Part shown: one piece after another, positions 6,731-64,000 of the stretch
Layout: every line of letters starts with the position of its first letter
How positions within the stretch are numbered: position 1 is the first letter of the stretch
Assembly: GCA_002104905.1 (NCBI GenBank)
Contig: MCFE01000172.1
Location: 1 to 64,000, forward strand
DNA length: 64,000 nt
Direction of reading: 5' to 3'
Source of the DNA: Basidiobolus meristosporus CBS 931.73
Lineage: Eukaryota > Fungi > Basidiobolomycota
The notes under the pieces: model-generated
The model's database searches: none
What the model saw: only the letters and a program-made list of their open reading frames with translations
Told to the model about the DNA's origin: nothing
Made by a program: the position numbers and the translations under genes

Positions 6731-8461
6731 AAACCCTATGAAAAATAATTTGGTTCTGGAGGTGAATCCAATCCAGTTGAGCCAAGATGATCCCATCAGG
6801 AGACTGCAACATTGTTAGCAGCTTGGAATCAATAACTATCTACATGATCTTATGACAGGATCACAACATTGTTTGGCTAATTTTACAATCAAATAAAGTT
6901 AGAACATGACAGTGTTTTTATGATATTTTGCTAAGGGTGGCATGGCATCTTTGCAGTCTTAGTATACTCTACAACTAGTTGAGTGGATCTAACTGGCCAG
7001 TACATCCCATTGCCTTATATGACAAAGTACTTGACAGTGTTCCAATGGCCTCATTGCAAGCCTCTCATGGCATTATTACAGCAGTATGTGGCCTATAGAT
7101 GGTTCTGTATAATGCTACTGTACCTACTTACCAAATGATATTTCCTTTTCTTACCTCCTCTTGTGCAATTCATATATTCCACTGCAGAATCACCCTACTT
7201 TATTTACTTGCCCACTACTACCTTGGGTATTACACATATATTCTGAATCAGTAAATACTATGGTCTCCTGCTTACTAACCACTACAAATACATGCACCTG
7301 TCACAATTGACATACTTCTAGCACCTCAAATTTATCACTTTTTAGTATGATACTTGCAAAGTTGCCATATATCTTATATTGCTTCATCTTGCTAACATAT
7401 ACTTGGTGACCACCACATCTGTCATAAATACCTCCTGAATATCCACAAAGTACTTTCTGGTATTTAGCCAATATATTCCTTCTCCCTGCTGGACTCTAGT
7501 CTCATTATAGGTGCACACTGGCTCTTGCTTGTATGAATACTGTATTAAATGCTGTAGAAGTTGGCTTGCAACCAAGAGAAATCCTGCATACTTTTGAAGG
7601 GTTTTCCTAATAAGAATTAGCTGCTTGTTGCACCTAACCCAACTTTGCATTACTTAACTGATTACCCACGCATTGGGGCTGCTTAGCTTCTTAATACCAT
7701 AGGCATAGGTGACTTTATGGGCACATCTGTGCTGAGTATGTTTGAATTCTTCCTGGCTGTCCTCCATGTGCCAACTCACTACAACCATGACAGACCTGAA
7801 GGTAGTCCCTATAAATAATGATTTGTACCCATGGGTGGATCCAATCCAGATCAGCCATCAAGATCCTATCAGGAGGCTGCTATAAAACCAGCAGCTTGGA
7901 ATAATGACTCTCTATGTCCAGTTGCCTATATGGCAAAAACCCTGACGGTGCTCTCACGGCCTCTTTGCAGGCCTCTGATGGCATTATCATAGCTGTATAG
8001 TGGCCTACAGCTAGTTCTGCATAATGTCACCATACCAATTTACCAAACAGTATTTCCTTTTTCTGCCTCCCCTTTTGAAATTCATATTTTCCACTGTAGA
8101 ATCACCCCTTTTTATTTGCCTACCCACTACTACCTTGGGTATTCCACATATAGTTTGAATCAAAAAAACTATGGCCTCCAGCTTACTGACCTCTCCAAAC
8201 ACACACACCTGCTACAACTGATATACTTCTATCACCTCACTCTACAGCTTTTTAGTGTGATGCTTGCAAAGTTGCTATATACATTGTATTGCTGGTAACA
8301 TACACATCTTGCAAACAAATGCTTGGTTGCAACCGCTTCTGCCATGAATACCTCGTGAATATCTGCAAAGAGCTTTAGGGTATTCAACCAATATTTTGCT
8401 ACTCCCTGCTGGATTCTAGTACACCTTATGGGTGCATTCAGACTCTTGTTTGTGTGAATTC

Positions 8462-46822: not shown

Positions 46823-47472
46823 ATTGAGCAGCCAGTGCACCCTACTCTTTCTTTTTCAACATATAATTCATTCCATCTCATACACTCATATCTTTAGTGA
46901 ATTCTTCGACCAGAGGGAAAACTCCAAATTTGTGAGGGATTCTTTTGAATGATTCAAGCAATCTTTTAGATGTCAGACATATGGAACTCTTGATACTTTC
47001 ATCATCGTACAAAAAATCAAATAACATCACAGTTCCGTATTCCTGAATTATTTTCCAACATTGCAAGCAGACTGAGGCATTGTTGTGGGGGGGGGTAGGC
47101 CTGGTCGATCGATCTCTAGATCTTAGGATTGTGTTCAAAGATCCCATATGGTGTCGTAGTTGGGCTTATACATAATGTGATGTTTATTTAAAGGGAAACA
47201 AGATTTCAATTATAGTTTGAGAGGCTCATCATCTAAAGCTAGACACGAGCAAATTAGTGCTGTGGAGGGAGCGGGTGGAGAACATATGAACGATTAAGTT
47301 TAGAGAATTAAAGGTTGCTCTAAGCAGTGTATTGTTTGCTTTTCTAATAAAAAAAACCGTTTTGTTTGATAAAAAGTTGGTTTAAGCAATGGGAATGAAT
47401 GGGGCCAGCGATTCACTGGAAGATTTAAGTGCTTTGAATGCTACATGTCTTAGCCGACAGGTCAAAGTTAAG

Positions 47473-49756: not shown

Positions 49757-52640
49757 ATGGACTTCAACGCTAATACAGAGCTCTCACAATTGCATAAGGA
49801 ATTAGAAGAAGATGCTGTTAAATATTCCCCTGCCCAGTTTCACCTTACTCCTGGCTTGATCCCAGAGGGAACAGTGGAAGAATGGAATTCGCGCAGCAGA
49901 ACTCTGAAAGCCACCATGAATCAAGCCGGTAACGAATTGACCGTATATGTTGGAGGGAAAAAGGCCAAGGAGCTTCTCAAGGTTATATTGACTATCTTTT
50001 GGAATTGTTATATATTTGTTATTTTACTCATACATTCAACTATGTTTTAAAGTCCGATTCACAACTCAAATCTTTTGAACAAGATCAGCAAATCCACACC
50101 GTAGCATGGAATAAATTTTCTCAAAAGAGGCGTCCTGTAAGTATTTTCTATCTGCCTCCTAGTGATGTTGGTTGATCTTTACTCGGACTCTCTAGTTCAT
50201 CAACACCACCTACGGTATTTTCCGTCTGTACCAAACATTAAACTTGGAGAGCGGAGCGCGTGACGAATACCAAGCGTATGTTGTTTCATTAACTTTCCTA
50301 GATTTATCTAAGGTTAACAATCTCACGTTGCTTATAGTAAAGTAGATGCACATACAATCAGCCAATATTATTCGGAGGCACTTAAAAATCACTTAGTCCT
50401 TCTTCAAGTAATTCCCCTAATGGCTATTCTATTCTTTGGCGGATACTAAAAATTACGTGAAATTAGAGCGATGGTCCAGACAAAAACGCTAGTGAAGTCA
50501 TTCTCTTCGAAGGGATTTATACTATTTGGAATCTCTGCGAAGTTCTTTATCTCTCTAAAAATCCTGAGGCTCCGATAGCAGATAACTATATACGGTGGTT
50601 GAATTTTAACTTCCCTGGTTTGCTTCTTTCTTAAACATCAGCAAAAGTACATTTCATTAATATTGAGTCCTATAACAGCGCCTTCGGTGCAGGAAGGGGA
50701 AGAAATCGCACAGGCACCAAAGCCATCTCAACACCCTCAGTACTGGAGCTATTTGAACAAGTAAGATACTGGCATGCAATGTTTGCAGGTTTCTGGTATT
50801 TGAAACTAATTCAAACAAGATGCGTTGTACGTGGACTCGTACAGGCTGCAAAGAAACTATTAGAGTATCAACTAAATGACCGAAACTCTGGTCTAAACAC
50901 TGAATCAATGAATTCTGCCATGGTAGTTAGCTATTTAATATGGTGTCCATTTGAGTAAGCCGACTAATGTTTCCTGTAGAATTTATTAGACAAAATGCCC
51001 CGGGCTTCGAATCATAGATCCTATGGGGAGTTTGCAAAGAAATGGCGTATCTGGCGGGAGGAATGCCGGTAACAATCATATTTGTGACATACCAGTTTTC
51101 AGCCATAACTAATTATTTTTTTAGTCATTTGGCTATGCACGAACGCAACAAGAATTTTAGCACACTCTTTTCCATTTTATCTGGCGATGAGGAGACTATC
51201 TTGCAGGTTACAGAGTCTTGGGAGGAAGCATTAGGTGCGATGCTGCTTTATTGCTATCCCGCTGTAGAGGCCGATGGTCTACAGTAAGTGAATTGGTTTG
51301 ATTTATATTATACTTCCCCCTCCCTTACGCTGTTATAGGAATTACGTGGAAGCTTGCGTTGATCGCCATCCAGTGAACGAAAACAAAATTCTAGATAATG
51401 TTCTCTTGGCTATGGTACGACAAGATAAGAGTAAAATGATTAGATTGTGTAGTAGGATCGACTGGTGGCTAGTCGCCCATCTGACTGATATCCTCTACAA
51501 ATCTGGAAACTTGAACGACCTTCGTTTTGAGTATTGGCCTTTGCTGTATACTTAGCTTTCGAGTATGAACTCATTCATTGTTTGCATAATAGCGTAAGCC
51601 ACGTATGGGAGTTTTTCTTGGCCAGCTATGCCGAGATCCTTATTCCTCATCGCACTTTGTGGCATATTGGGATAGATTATTTGGCAGTATGCCCAAACAT
51701 TGGCAAGGCGTCAATAGAAGAGGTAAGTATCTACAAAGTTCACACCTATACGATCTATGTAGGCTAAGCATTCATTTGTGTAGTACATCATGCATATCCC
51801 TATTGAAAATGAAATGAAGGCACGCAAGGTTTTAGATATTTGCGCTCAGTACTGCTCTGAGCATGTCTTCAATACTATCAATAGAGTAAGCGTTAAACCC
51901 TCCTACGTCTTCACTACATAATGTTAAGATGTTATCTCTGTTTAGATATTAGCTAGCCGTAAACTCAAACAAGGCCAGTATGCAGCAGCCATTGCGTATT
52001 ATATTAATGCCGGCGAACCTAAACGTGTCATCACCATATCTGATATTCTGATTGACGAGTATCTCAAAAATGGTAAACTCAGCTCACATTTCTCGAATAA
52101 GATGCGTCTCTAACACTTCGCTAGGTGACATGTCTTGCATGGATTTAATCGATGGTATCGGTTATGATGCCGTCTTTAGTGATCGTTTGGTATTTTTGGC
52201 AGATTACCGCTCTTTCCACGAGCTGTATAAGGTGCGAATATGCTTAGTAATGAAGTATGCTTCAATCCATAAAACTGATTCTCCACTCTTCATAGGGAGG
52301 AAAATACTTGGAAGCCGCGAAGTTGCTACGGAAACTACTAGAAAGTGAATACGCACCCAAGAAATTCTGGCCTGTCCTATTAGTCGATGCAATCCCTTTG
52401 TTAGAGGGTGAAGAGATCGTATTTGATGTCGATGATACATACGAATTGATGAGATGTCTAGAAGAAATCACCCTCTCGCACCAAAAGGAATACTATCTAC
52501 AATTTTTACCCAGCTCCGCCACATCAGAGAAAGACATCACTGTGGACGAGAGGGAGCGCCAACTTGCTATCGTCAGATTAGCCCTCTCAAGAAACTTGGC
52601 CAGAGCTATGATCGTCTTTAACAATGGATTTAGCATGTAA
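49757..52640 (+). CDS. NUP85: Nucleoporin Nup85, multi-exon
   Basis: SWEEALGAMLLYCYP, DWWLVAHLTDIL, LWHIGIDYL, KFWPVLLVDAIPLLE..TYELMRCLEEI, RLALSRNLARA. Confidence 0.88.
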
Positions 52641-53062: not shown

Positions 53063-55158
53063 ATGTCTGGTGTTCAGGAAGCCAAGAGCTTCTTAAGCTC
53101 AATTTATCAACGGGCCGAGGAAAGCTACAAGAAACCCTATGTCACACTAACTTATGCCCAGAGTCTTGACGGCAAAATCGCTGGCTCAGGCGGCAAGCAG
53201 ATAACTCTAAGCTGCAACGAGTCGATGGCTGTGACCCACCGGTAAGCTAATCTCCACCATCCTCTCGTCAACTCTTATTTATTATCTTTCAACTTAGTCT
53301 ACGCACTATAAATGACGGGATTTTAATTGGCGTTGGAACTCTGCTCAACGATGATCCCCGCCTAACCGGTACTTATTTCTGTCAAATATCACCAGTCACC
53401 TCATCTAAAGCATTAGACTTTAGCTCGTATTGTGGAGCCTAACGAAATACCTACGCAACCCCGACCCATCATTCTCGATTCTAATCTCCGTTTCCCTCTA
53501 AAATCAAACCTTATCTTGAGTGCTTCTCAAGGTGGAGGAAAGTTCCCATGGGTGTTTTGTGCTCCTGATCATCCACCTCAACGTCGTCAGGTACCATATA
53601 GCGCTTATCATATCTCGCTTAGCATACCACTAATGTTAATACTCCCAGGCTCTTGAGGCTGCTGGCGTACAAATATTTGTTGTCCCTAGACACGGAGATA
53701 AACTATCCATTCCTGAAGTCCTTCGAAAAATCGAGGAGCTTGGTATCAGAAAGCTGATGGTTGAAGGCGGTTCCAACGTAATTCGTGAATTTTTGGCCTC
53801 TGGATTTGTGGATCTTTGTGTTGTAACCATTGCACCGGTCTACATTGGCGGGACTGGCGTGGCATCGGTGGCAGATGGAGATGTAAGCTTCTTCAATCCC
53901 TTCTCCTATATAGGTCAAGACTAACTCGCTGTGTTTAATGTAGAATCGCCCGTTGTCCAAGTTGAGCAATGTAAAGTACCATCAGTTTGGTACAGATATG
54001 GTTGTTGCTGGATATGCCTCCCCCACCGACCAAGGCTTTAGCCAAGGCGCTCAAAATTATAACCCACAAAACGCTTACGCTCCCAATGCATATCCACCTA
54101 ATCAACAATCGCAGAACCAAGGATATCCTCCTTCTGCAGCCTATCCACCCAATCAAGGTCCTGGCCAATCTGCTGCCAGTAACTACCCCCCTCCATCGCC
54201 CAATAATGCTTATCCTCCCAAACCGGCTGGCAACTACCCACCTCCAGGCCCTCCTACTGGTGGCTATCCACCACAAAGTCCCCCTGGTGGCGGTTATCCT
54301 CCTCAAGGCTCTCCAGTTGGTGGTTATCCTCCTCAAAATCCCCCAGGTGGCGGTTATCCTCACCAAAGCCCTGTAACTGGCGGTTACCCTCCACAAAGCC
54401 CCCCAGTCGGTGGTTATCCTCCTCAAAGTCCTGCAATGACTGGCTATCCTCCTCAAAGTCCTGCAACTTCCGGCTATCCTTCTCAAAACTCTGCAACTGG
54501 TGGTTATCCTCCACAGAACCCTTCAACAAGCGGTTACCCACCACTAAGCCCTACTGGTGCCTACCCTCCTCCAAGACCTCAAAATAGCGGTTATCCACCC
54601 AAACCTGATAATGGCCAGCCCCTTTCACCACGTATCAACGCTGGTATAAGCCCCCAACAAGGGTATCCTCCTGCTACCGGGCTGTATCCCCCTCCCAAAA
54701 CCACCCCTCCTATACAATCCCCCGACCGCGTAACATCACCTACTGGATACTCCCCTCAGCATGGTTCGATATACCCACCACCAGGAAATTCAGGCTACCC
54801 ACCCCAAGGAAGCTCTGGCTATCCCCCAAAGCCTTCCCAGACCGGCTATCCACCTTTCAACACTACATCTCCAGTTCACTCCCCACCACGCGTCTCGTCT
54901 CCCCCGAATGTATATCCACCACCACAGGGAGCCGGATATCCACCCCCAGGCTCTGGTTATCCACCTAAAAACAACCAAGGAGGATATCCTCCTGCTCAAT
55001 CGGCTCCATATCCCCCACAGAACAGCAATCAACCTCCATCACGTACTGGAACCGGCTACCCACCCGTTGCAGGCGGCTATCCTCCAGCATATCCTCCTAG
55101 CAACTCACCCTACCCGCCCCAGAACCCCACTGCACCTTATCCTCCGCCTTCTAAATAA
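53063..55158 (+). CDS. RIB7: RibD-C/Rib7-like pyrimidine reductase fused to ~380-aa Pro/Gly/Tyr/Gln-rich tail
   Basis: PYVTLTYAQSLDGKIA, DGILIGVGTLLNDDPRLT, PRPIILDS, LMVEGGS, VTIAPVYIG, QFGTDMVV. The last exon continues in frame to 55158. Confidence 0.8.
54259..54555 (+). repeat. ~10 tandem 30-bp coding repeats (GGYPPQSPxx)
   Basis: GGYPPQSPPG GGYPPQGSPV GGYPPQNPPG GGYPHQSPVT GGYPPQSPPV GGYPPQSPAM TGYPPQSPAT SGYPSQNSAT GGYPPQNPST SGYPPLSP. Confidence 0.9.
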
Positions 55159-56029
55159 TCCGGCACACTTGACCTCCTAAACTAGTTCACGATCTGCCAA
55201 ATTCAATGGAAAACGATGAAATATATATATATTTTCCAAGGTTGCAATAAATGAGATTTCTTTGGTGGGAATATCAGCATACATGGCATGATTCCACAAC
55301 ATAATGGATTACACTTGACTTGAAACTGTGCAAGTATGAGCCAGGGTATCTGAGCTTCATGGGGATTGGGGAGATTTCCCGCCATATTTTCATGGGTTGA
55401 TATTGTTGCAAGCTGCACTGCCACTGATGAGACCGTATGAAACAAAGATGAGTTGGTTTGTCGATGACCTGCATTTAGACACAATGGATTATTCCCAGCC
55501 AGGATTCCCTTGAGGATAAACCTTCTTGAATGGACTGCTATAAGAAGAGGACGATGGGACAACTAGTGTAACATATACTTGGCGTATTCCTTGAGACACA
55601 TACCTGAGCGCCTGCTTGGGAGTCAAATCTGACTGCACTAATTGGGAGTATTGGCTTGACAGGAAAATACCAAGAGGACACACGCCTTTTTGCGAGATGA
55701 TTGAGCTGGGAAGCCAAGCAACTGACTCTAATGGAACCTTATTGTGGCCTTATTTGGAATGCTATTTCTGTCGTAAATGCTATTTGTGAGTCAAGTTAGA
55801 ACCGAGTCTCTGGCTTAGCATCAAACCAACTTGATCATTGTCCATATAGCCTGTGTTCCAGCAACCATAAAATCGTAGTGGTAAATACCAATGGCTGGAT
55901 GAATGATCTCATCATATGAAATCCATTTGATACCAGCATCCACTCGTAGCGATATCCTGTTCTTCCTATATCAGAGAGCCGAGGGCATTTATTTAGATAC
56001 GTCTTACTTCGTTACTTGACCTTCAAATA

Positions 56030-60600: not shown

Positions 60601-61468
60601 TCTGAAGACGGGTGATCTCGCTCCAGCCTCGCATGTTTCAACTTGGGTAACTCATCAAGAGCAAACAATGCTGAATATACTGATCCGTGTACTACGGAGC
60701 GCTCGGCCCCACCACGCCAATGAGCCTGTCTTTCGGCCTCTGCTCGACCTCTCGGCAAAGGCCGATGTGAGATCACTTCACGCAGCTCCAATCGCGAACC
60801 CTAACCCGCCCATTCCTGGAGCATGGAGATTTTGAGTTGTCGATGCAATTTAATCTACTTTATTATGGAAGGTGCCCAATATATCCGTCAGCAGAAATGG
60901 CTATGCTTACCTGATTCATCACGACCCTAATACTCCCCAATTTTAGGAACATCCTTCGCTTGGAACATGCCATTGTTCGGGCGGATGGGCCACTCCCATT
61001 GGCTTCGCTTGGCGAGCCCAAGGTTGGAAGGCGCCGGATTGGTTTTTCTTGGGTCATGATAAATGAGTGTGCACCTAACCAAACTTTGGAAATGAAATGT
61101 TACCTAATGCAAATGGGCCAATCCCTGAGAATCCCGCGAGAAAATGCCACGAAGCTCGTGAATTGCTGAAAATCTTTATTTTTGAACATTAAGAAATGGT
61201 CCGACTATTTCTGTACAAAAAATAATGTTGCGAAAACTAGATGGCTATTCATATGAGTGGGATTGACCAGGAGGTTGCCAGGGTGCGGCTATCGGAGATG
61301 ACGGATGGGTGTCTGCAACCACGCGTGCCTGGGTGCAAGCGCGGTGCCACCATGTTGGGGTATTTGGAGGGGAGAGGGGGATGTAGATGATGCGATCCGG
61401 AGTAGTTAATTATGTAACAAGGCGATGAAAAAATAGAGGCGTAAGAAATTACTGTATGTTCATTAGGA

Positions 61469-64000
61469 TCATTTGGATCCACGAGAATTGTAGCTACTCT
61501 CGCTATCCGGCTCACTTTGGGCAGCAGAGAGATTGACCGACGAGAGACGGGCCAGCTGACTGGGCGAGTGATACCCTAGCTTCTCGATGGAGGTGCTGGA
61601 CGATCCGTGCATCGATAATCCCGTTAGCGCGTTGCTGGTTTTACGGCGCTTTTCGCGCTCAAATTCCGACCATTTTTTCATGGTGATTCGACTAGAGTCA
61701 AATTCACCCTCCTTCGTGGAGTGATCGCCTCCACCAGCGGCCTCACCAGCGACCAGTCTTGTCTGGCCCCAGCTGAAGTCGTCGAAATGCCAGAACGCGT
61801 AGACTGGGAGAACCAAATTCCAAATCGGTAAAGAGATAAGATATATGAACATCCATCCAACGTACACCAATTTTCTGGTGGTCATCACAATCAAGATGGC
61901 GGGTAATCCCAAGATAATAGCCAGCAGGGTGAGGGGGATGACCGGAACGGGGGTTACGATGAAAGCGATAACAATCAGGTATATGGTAAAGCAGATAGCG
62001 GCAGGGAGGACGGTGGTACCAATTAGCTCCATGAAGATTACAAATTGCATAGAGAAACAGAATGTTCCGCAGAGGTCTCGAATGAGAACCAGCTCCAAAA
62101 GGTTGTGCACAGTGGAGTTGATCCAACGACGGCGTTGGGAAAGCAAAACCCTGAATGAATCAGGAACCACAGTTTTACACACAGCTTGGGGTACAAAGAT
62201 CATTTTACGCTTGGGGAAAGTCTTCAACATCAGGGTGGTCAGGTAGCGATCTTCACCCAGCAAGAGTAGATTCTTCTTGTGCAGAGTGTCCACTACATTC
62301 TCGGAGTAATGCTCAACGATGTCGGGACTGGCTAATACTGGCACCCAGAAATTGCTAGGGCCCTTCGGCGCCTTGATCCGATACATACAGAAGCATCCTG
62401 GGAGACAGGTAACGCCGCCAAATACCGACTCGAAGGCCTTGCTCAAGTGATGGGAGATGTAGTATTCGAAAACTTGAATCATCGACACCCAGCTTTGAGA
62501 TTTGTTGGCAATCTTGGTTTCTCCACACAGCCCCATAATCTTCGGATCGCGGACCATACAGGAGACCATGCGGGTAACAGAGTCTGGGTACACCTTAGTA
62601 TCAGCATCCACCATCAGAACAATCTCGAAATTATCCGGACTCACGCCAGTAGTACTCCAAATAGCATTGAACAGCTCGTATTCCATCTCAGTCATACGGT
62701 CGTCAAACATAACATGCTGAAGGAACGACATCAATATAATCTGACTGTCACGTTTACCGCGATTACCAGGCTTCGGTGCATTGGCCTCCTCAGGGGTTCC
62801 ACATTTGGATATCAAAATCATGGGCACACGTTGTTGCTTTTCAAACGGAATAGTCTGATCATCGAACTTGTAATAGCCCGCATAGACCTTGGCCATGTTG
62901 TGTCTTTTCGAGCCATCAGCAATAGCAACGTAAGAGTAGGGTTGGACATTCTCGGGCGCTATGACGAAGTCCTTCATCATTGATAAGCACACATCTGGAG
63001 TAGACATATCATTCCCGCTACCAACAATGATACCGTCCGCAATAACGAGGATAAGCTTGTGTGATTGAGGATAGTCGGTCAAAGCCAGAGAGTCCAGTGT
63101 GGTACGAATACCATCGGCGCCTTCGGAATAGCACGTAACAAGCAGAATAGTGTGTGCCAAATTGAAGTTAAATGGCTGGAATGATACTGGAGGAGGGGTG
63201 GGTGGAACGTGAACATTCGATACGAAAGTCGATGAGCAGTAGGATGATCGGCGAGATGCTTCAAGGCTCATAGACGTGGGGCGATGATGAATGTTGGGCG
63301 GAACTAACGAATTAGACGAATGCTTCATGTCAGGGCTGTATGGATTCAGATTGGAGGTCCCTCTCTTGTAACCGTTATTCATGTCGGCGTTCGGGTAGGC
63401 CGAGTAGCGAGAGGTGATCGGAAGGGACCCGGTAGATTTACTAGGTTGCGAATTATTGCCTCGAGCGACGCTGATTGCTAGATTTGATGGACTCTCACTC
63501 CATTGTTCAATAGCTTCCATACGTTTCATGCGCTCTTCATACGTTTCTTGACGGAAGGAACCCAATCTCCAGCTTAAGACCCAGCCGAAAAACACGGCAA
63601 AGACGAACTTAGTCAACACCACGCCGAGAATCACGATGAGAGAAACGTAGAGTACTACATTCGAAATGATACAACCCATCGAATTAGTATCAAGTGCTCC
63701 AACTCTGAATATCTCCATCGCACATTTGGCTGCCTCTCTGTGGTAGTTGTTCAGGAAGAGAGTGGCATCAGTGCCCCTGTAGGGAGAATTGAGGTCACGA
63801 AGCTGGGTGAATATGGCCGGTGGAGTGACCCCAGGTACAAGCCAGTCAACCAAGCCAAAGTCCAAGACATGGCCGTTGTAGACCACAAGGCTTTTTTGTT
63901 TGGATTGTATATCTTTCCATTCAAAATATACCTCACCGTCCAATGGGAGATTGGGTGTAATTACTTGATTGCCACCTGCGTTGTGTAGACAGTTATTTGC
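61469..64000 (-). CDS. Chitin synthase, class IV (Chs3-like); 5' part beyond window end
   Basis: [70 protein letters not shown]. The frame is open to base 64000. Confidence 0.95.

Follow-up and report, generated by a model that had tools for sequence, protein, structure and literature searches.

The closest described systems for the gene considered here are Saccharomyces cerevisiae RIB7 (ScRIB7; PDB 4HA7/4HA9) and other fungal and archaeal DAROPP reductases, proteins of 230–300 residues that have a RibD_C fold and no deaminase domain, and that carry a G-x-G-T...D motif, an E-G-G motif and a Thr where substrate preference is set. ScRIB7 requires the NADPH-site motif G-x-G...G-G as well as residues Thr79, Asp83, Glu180 and Gly182; its Thr35 is a substrate-preference residue whose bacterial counterpart is Lys, and its crystal structure places the dimer interface on strands β1 and β7–β9 (PMC3631187). 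RibD_C domains are also found joined to other parts. For example, in the bacterial RibD deaminase-reductases and in the GCHII-RibD_C proteins, hundreds of which were found at 40–45% identity in a domain search, the fusion partner is a folded enzyme of the same pathway and sits at the N-terminal side. A different kind of precedent is offered by the N-terminal regions of annexin A7/A11, penta-EF-hand proteins and copines, which are rich in Pro, Gly and Tyr, disordered, and built from GYPP units.

The Rib7 of the gut fungus Basidiobolus shares the fold and the motifs of the single-domain reductases but adds ~380 residues to them, which is 1.6 times the size of the enzyme. In contrast to the RibD and GCHII fusions, its partner is a disordered repeat, and that repeat is C-terminal; in contrast to the annexin, penta-EF-hand and copine regions, with which we detect no common ancestry, it is attached to a metabolic enzyme. 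Two deposited proteins of a different species, Basidiobolus ranarum (P0001 and P0002, an orthologue and a paralogue, respectively), have the same domain-plus-tail layout. Our literature searches, which covered riboflavin in Basidiobolus, extended Rib7 proteins and GYPP repeats, turned up no mention of a Rib7–tail fusion. Basidiobolus is a cause of human and animal mycoses. Since Rib7 has been put forward as a target for antifungals (PMC3631187), a feature of the enzyme that is specific to this genus is of some practical interest.

The gene under study comes from Basidiobolus meristosporus CBS 931.73 (assembly GCA_002104905.1, contig MCFE01000172.1). It lies in what we call the window, i.e. the whole 64,000-nucleotide stretch that was analysed, which from position 47063 onward matches the genomic locus of the deposited protein P0126. 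The gene occupies 53063–55158 on the + strand, with its ATG at 53063 and its TAA at 55156–55158, and its five exons are separated by four introns of 55–61 nt, all of the GT-AG type (Table 1).

Table 1. Features of the Rib7 gene of B. meristosporus, in window coordinates.
Feature	Position	Strand	Remarks
Exon 1	53063..53241	+	start codon and N-terminal part of RibD_C, including VTLTYAQSLD
Intron 1	53242..53297	+	GTAAGC...TTAG, 56 nt
Exon 2	53298..53368	+	G-x-G-T-x-x-x-D motif (GVGTLLND): NADPH pyrophosphate site and catalytic Asp (PMC3631187)
Intron 2	53369..53423	+	GTACTT...TTAG, 55 nt
Exon 3	53424..53590	+	middle portion of the RibD_C fold; identical to deposited P0126
Intron 3	53591..53648	+	GTACCA...CCAG, 58 nt
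Exon 4	53649..53882	+	RibD_C profile positions 116-170, including MVEGG (active-site Glu-Gly-Gly)
Intron 4	53883..53943	+	phase 0, GAT/GTAAGC...GTAG/AAT, 61 nt; read-through gives 13 codons, then TAA
Exon 5	53944..55158	+	404 codons, open frame to TAA
First 26 codons of exon 5	53944..54021	+	β8–β9 hairpin of the Rib7 fold; conserved YxxFGxDMV motif
Disordered tail, ~378 residues	54022..55155	+	32 YPP units
Ten tandem 30-nt units (GYPPQSPxxG)	54262..54561	+	exact period
Non-repetitive C-terminal half of the tail	54592..55155	+	best-conserved part of the tail, omega ~0.09 vs B. ranarum
Stop codon TAA	55156..55158	+	
AATAAA, possible poly(A) signal	55246..55251	+	88 nt past the stop; sole AATAAA in 53063-55500

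The assignment to Rib7 is carried by both profile and structural comparisons. In a Pfam search run exon by exon, exons 1, 2 and 4 gave hits to PF01872 (RibD_C) that are colinear with the profile (positions 1–35, 38–59 and 116–170; best E = 9e-14). None of the exons showed a deaminase domain, in keeping with the stand-alone reductase of the eukaryotic and archaeal type. The steps that call for a whole protein, such as the PDB search, the structure prediction and searches that depend on length, used the deposited orthologue P0001, residues 1–250 of which match solved Rib7/RibD chains at E = 3.5e-28 to 5e-20, with 4HA7 at E = 5e-24. GVGTLLND of exon 2 and MVEGG of exon 4 fall in invariant columns of a 39-sequence alignment, and the Thr of VTLTYAQSLD in exon 1 is the counterpart of ScRIB7 Thr35; VTLTY aligns with VTLTY in 4HA7 and with VILKL in the bacterial 7LRH. 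Judged by these residues, the catalytic apparatus is intact and Rib7 looks active.

The fold is finished in exon 5. The opening segment of this exon ends in ...YHQFGTDMVVAGYAS and lines up with the Y-x-x-F-G-x-D-[IM]-V strand at the C-terminus of other fungal Rib7 proteins. In an AlphaFold2 model of B. ranarum P0001, built on the 39-sequence alignment, the exon-5 residues form the strands E224-233 and E236-244 (pLDDT ~90), and the nine-strand RibD_C sheet, β8–β9 included, is complete only with exon 5 spliced in. An earlier note on this DNA had read a phase-0 intron ahead of the final RibD-C part, and the boundaries are exactly those it gave, with GAT before GTAAGC and AAT after the closing TAG. 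It had also held that exon 5 contains the last RibD-C strand and runs without a stop into the tail; the continuous frame stands, but the segment encodes two strands, i.e. a β-hairpin, rather than one. Read in its two alternative forward frames, exon 5 is broken by 7 and 11 stops. Since the Rib7 fold ends near 54021, about 378 residues are left for the tail.

A word search with exon 5 led to the two B. ranarum proteins, P0001 (594 aa) and P0002 (470 aa), which combine PF01872 with a like tail and are deposited under the name DAROPP reductase. Four loci were compared: the window, L001 (the A orthologue in B. ranarum), L002 (paralogue B of B. ranarum) and L003 (paralogue B of B. meristosporus). 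At all four, a phase-0 GT-AG intron with in-frame stops is followed by a single exon in which the last strands and the tail run on uninterrupted. The fusion of Rib7 and tail in one reading frame that had been proposed from the window is thus borne out as a single stop-free exon at each of the four loci examined, and the suggested look at a related fungus gave the same answer, with an equal domain-plus-tail layout at the B. ranarum loci. The tails are 230–382 residues long; because the repeat half varies in length over this range and L002 has an internal stop, tail length is not tightly fixed. The L002 stop (7647–7717) is a TAA in place of the Tyr codon of a GYPP unit, and the frame stays GYPP-like up to the end of the contig; it reflects either a truncation of recent date or an error in the sequencing.

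The surroundings of these genes place the duplication in time. L001 is syntenic with the window, having Nup85 upstream and the same 369-aa gene downstream, and L003 lies in a block paralogous to the window region, with a chitin synthase (L003 9464–11890) that is similar to the minus-strand chitin synthase at 61460–63900. Since the chitin synthases beside both Rib7 copies are paralogous, Rib7 sits within a duplicated multi-gene block, and the synteny of L001 with the window, taken with the paralogous block at L003, places the duplication before the split of the two species.

Is the tail part of Rib7 at all? The public annotation suggests otherwise. The deposited P0126 (230 aa) is identical to exons 1–4 and then continues for 13 codons of intron 4 (53883–53924) to a stop; because it reads into the intron, it is without the β8–β9 strands. 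The deposited paralogue P0127 (234 aa) has the same defect, reading intron 4 to a stop (L003 6826–6870) with the last two strands absent. The window tail, 54022–55158, carries no annotation in the public genome, and a separate 165-aa partial model, with neither start nor stop and in the tail frame, is deposited within the L003 tail (7184–7678). It could be argued from these models, two of which end in intron 4 and one of which lies in the tail of the paralogue, that transcripts retain or end in intron 4 and that the GYPP region forms its own gene or goes untranslated. We find this very unlikely. A 230-aa protein would be without the β8–β9 hairpin that is present in every other fungal Rib7 and forms part of the dimer interface, and this hairpin shares both exon and frame with the tail at all four loci. 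Nor does the tail look like a gene of its own; the paralogue-B tails have no Met, no Met position is common to the A tails, and the 165-aa model, to judge from its missing ends and its frame, is a fragment of the Rib7 open reading frame called as its own gene. Additionally, the sole AATAAA lies past the stop of the tail, and the annotation of B. ranarum, made independently, joins domain and tail in a single protein. We take P0126 and P0127 to be truncated gene models, and we are very confident that there is one gene and one protein here. On this reading, the public annotation of the reference Basidiobolus genome stands corrected for both Rib7 paralogues.

If the tail belongs to Rib7, does it matter to the organism? 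A neutral origin is conceivable; an old stop could have been lost, a slippery 30-nt repeat could have grown, and the read-on could have been tolerated because the tail hangs off the end of the fold. The first half of the tail is indeed tandem and differs in copy number between loci, with the 30-nt array of the window being expanded by ~nine extra decapeptides relative to the other three; paralogue B of B. ranarum has a stop inside its tail; no known motif is enriched; and the tail has no relatives outside the genus. The pattern of substitution, however, argues for selection. In a nucleotide-only alignment of exon 5 between the window and L001, all 21 indels are multiples of three, whereas the adjacent non-coding DNA, i.e. 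the 600 nt downstream of the stop, is at 41% identity. In the C-terminal half of the tail, the mismatches between these two loci fall at 0.14/0.11/0.53 by codon position, and in this non-repetitive half pS is ~0.7 (saturated) vs a pN of 0.14. For the tail as a whole, the comparison with L001 gives pN 0.21, pS 0.73 and omega ~0.09 (Nei-Gojobori), figures to be read with the caveat that, in low-complexity sequence, a protein-guided alignment makes pS too high compared with pN, for which the nucleotide-only alignment serves as the control; exons 1–4 of the domain give pN 0.07, pS 0.67 and omega ~0.04 (Nei-Gojobori, per-exon counts summed). In aligned columns the tail of P0001 shares 70% identity with that of the window, the two being separated by many in-frame indels, and the last 19 residues have a single difference between the A orthologues. 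Moreover, the tail has been kept through duplication and speciation in all four copies.

The view that the tail is real coding DNA, put forward from the window alone, is upheld by the in-frame indels, the third-position mismatches and the omega of ~0.09 relative to B. ranarum, and the synonymous variation claimed for the repeats is present as well, the ten 30-nt units having a pS of 0.56 vs a pN of 0.28. We regard purifying selection on the tail in the Rib7 frame as shown by these comparative data, and a functional tail rather than a neutral one is, in our judgment, quite probable, leaving the neutral origin improbable. A housekeeping riboflavin enzyme can bear a disordered tail larger than itself that has been selected since before a duplication and a speciation.

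What, then, is being preserved? The tail is 85% P/G/Y/Q/S/N/T (P 30%, G 13%, S 11%, Y 10%, Q 9% and N 7%), has <5% hydrophobic residues and no Glu, and carries a net charge of ~+8. AlphaFold2 gives residues 249–594 of P0001 a pLDDT <50 and no secondary structure. The building block is (G/S)-G-Y-P-P at a spacing of ~10 residues, and YPP itself occurs 32 times vs 3.5 expected from composition, a count that was reached in none of 2000 shuffles. The Tyr residues, one per 9.6 residues on average, are evenly placed; in the window tail, aromatic spacing has a coefficient of variation (CV) of 0.43 vs 0.91 in shuffles, with 0 of 2000 shuffles as low, and the CV is 0.43–0.62 across all four tails vs ~0.9 in shuffles. 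The tail thus shows the two properties of a sticker-and-spacer chain of the phase-separating type: predicted disorder, seen in the P0001 model, and, at all four loci, evenly spaced aromatics. The Tyr residues are also maintained over time; of 31 aligned positions, 28 agree between the A orthologues, and 15 of 20 agree when all four loci are compared. A six-frame scan of the 64-kb window picked out Rib7 exon 5 as the only YPP-dense open reading frame.

The combination of a RibD_C domain with a YPP tail appears to be peculiar to Basidiobolus. The earlier note had described Rib7 orthologues elsewhere as small single-domain enzymes, and so they are; fungal Rib7 proteins from many phyla have the Y-x-x-F-G-x-D-[IM]-V motif and then end, within 5–15 residues past the last strand. 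A profile of exon 5 from the four loci, searched against 1.84 billion representative proteins, gave a single strong match, to a Basidiobolus cluster (E = 8.5e-109), and RibD_C with a YPP tail was found in Basidiobolus only. The same search returned 79 weak matches, none better than E = 1e-19 and all within the repeat region, and among the top weak matches that were checked none had RibD_C and none came from Basidiobolus; they comprise OCRE, SpoU methylase, racemase, DM9, EF-hand, copine and bacterial surface proteins of unrelated organisms. Long RibD_C proteins do exist elsewhere, as bacterial GTP-cyclohydrolase II fusions or as doubtful merged models such as P0008 of Ambispora, which has an ataxin-10 domain. 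Within the genus, a domain search of the two annotated Basidiobolus proteomes found no tail-less Rib7, and so the tailed protein appears to be the housekeeping enzyme. Neither the protein database searches nor the profile search yielded a stand-alone homologue of the tail, which tells against the earlier suggestion of a moonlighting fusion with another gene.

The resemblance to annexin A7/A11 brings a more specific proposal into play, namely that a Ca2+-binding penta-EF-hand protein of the ALG-2 type or the WW domains of Rsp5 dock onto the tail, leading to membrane recruitment or ubiquitin-dependent turnover. The composition is GYPP-like, there are weak matches to an annexin (P0007), EF-hand proteins (P0251/P0252) and a copine (P0256), and the conserved extreme C-terminus contains PYP...PYP, which resembles the type-1-like site of TSG101 (PMC5037681). 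The motifs themselves, however, are missing or unremarkable. ALG-2 motifs are of type 1, PPYP-(x)n-YP, or of type 2, PxPGF (PMC5037681, PMC4346919), and none of the four tails contains the strict PPYP...YP or PxPGF, so that the analogy to ALG-2 binding drawn from the window does not carry over; the looser type-1-like pattern (PxYP or PYP, then YP) occurs twice vs 1.2 expected, i.e. with no enrichment. The PPAY near the end of the tail (tail residue 358), which had been read as a WW-binding site, is present but not conserved, and PPxY is depleted rather than enriched (1 vs 3.4 expected); there is none in either B. ranarum copy, and paralogue B of B. meristosporus has one PPPY at an unrelated place. 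Finally, the likeness is compositional and restricted to the repeat region, at E = 1e-19 or weaker vs 1e-109 within the genus. We consider ALG-2 or WW docking improbable.

The explanation that we prefer is a different one. On our reading, a single gene encodes an active 2,5-diamino-6-ribosylamino-4(3H)-pyrimidinone 5'-phosphate reductase that runs directly past its last β-strand into a disordered tail of ~380 residues. Since Rib7 forms homodimers through an interface that takes in the last strands, each dimer would show two tails, and each tail would present at least 30 evenly spaced Tyr-Pro-Pro stickers in a spacer of Pro, Gly, Ser and Gln. The tail may then be a selected multivalent interaction module, acting either by self-association (clustering or condensation) or by docking to a partner or surface that recognizes YPP, and it would do so without canonical PPxY/WW or ALG-2 motifs. 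As no known binding motif is enriched, it is composition and patterning that carry this mechanism, which we put forward tentatively, as one possibility. The idea of a condensate is compatible with evenly spaced Tyr in a Pro/Gly-rich chain predicted to be fully disordered. A bolder version, in which the YPP array would be a genus-specific module that gathers dimeric Rib7 into condensates or onto a surface or partner by way of a YPP reader that has yet to be described, is speculative, and we rate it as rather unlikely. If this bolder version is true, Rib7 would be a rare instance of a housekeeping vitamin-pathway enzyme with its spatial organization written into a large, selected, low-complexity tail.

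Taken as a whole, the explanation by a selected multivalent tail has our moderate confidence, a compromise between a strong belief in the single gene, a good degree of belief in the function of its tail and a weaker one in the mechanism. Rib7 with or without a regular Tyr-Pro-Pro array offers a clean system for the study of tail function, as the enzyme is a small dimer with a simple assay and can be used in yeast complementation.

Other patterns in the tail were considered and set aside. A CTD-like or proline-directed array of phosphosites, suggested by YPPTSP and by islands of SP/TP, was rejected, as [ST]P occurs 19 times vs 18 expected and falls below expectation in the other copies; SH3 ligands were rejected, with PxxP depleted in the tail; and the single matches to PTAP and YPxL are not conserved between orthologues.

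The neighborhood of Rib7 offers some minor observations as well. A gene for a ubiquitin-conjugating enzyme (UQ_con) lies 3' of Rib7 both in L001 (5964–6496) and in L003 (8128–8664), and the intergenic stretch 55159–56000 of the window showed no trace of such a gene. Upstream, Nup85 is a single 681-aa model in B. meristosporus (~49757–52640) and is split into models of 147 and 309 aa in B. ranarum (L001 69–2193).
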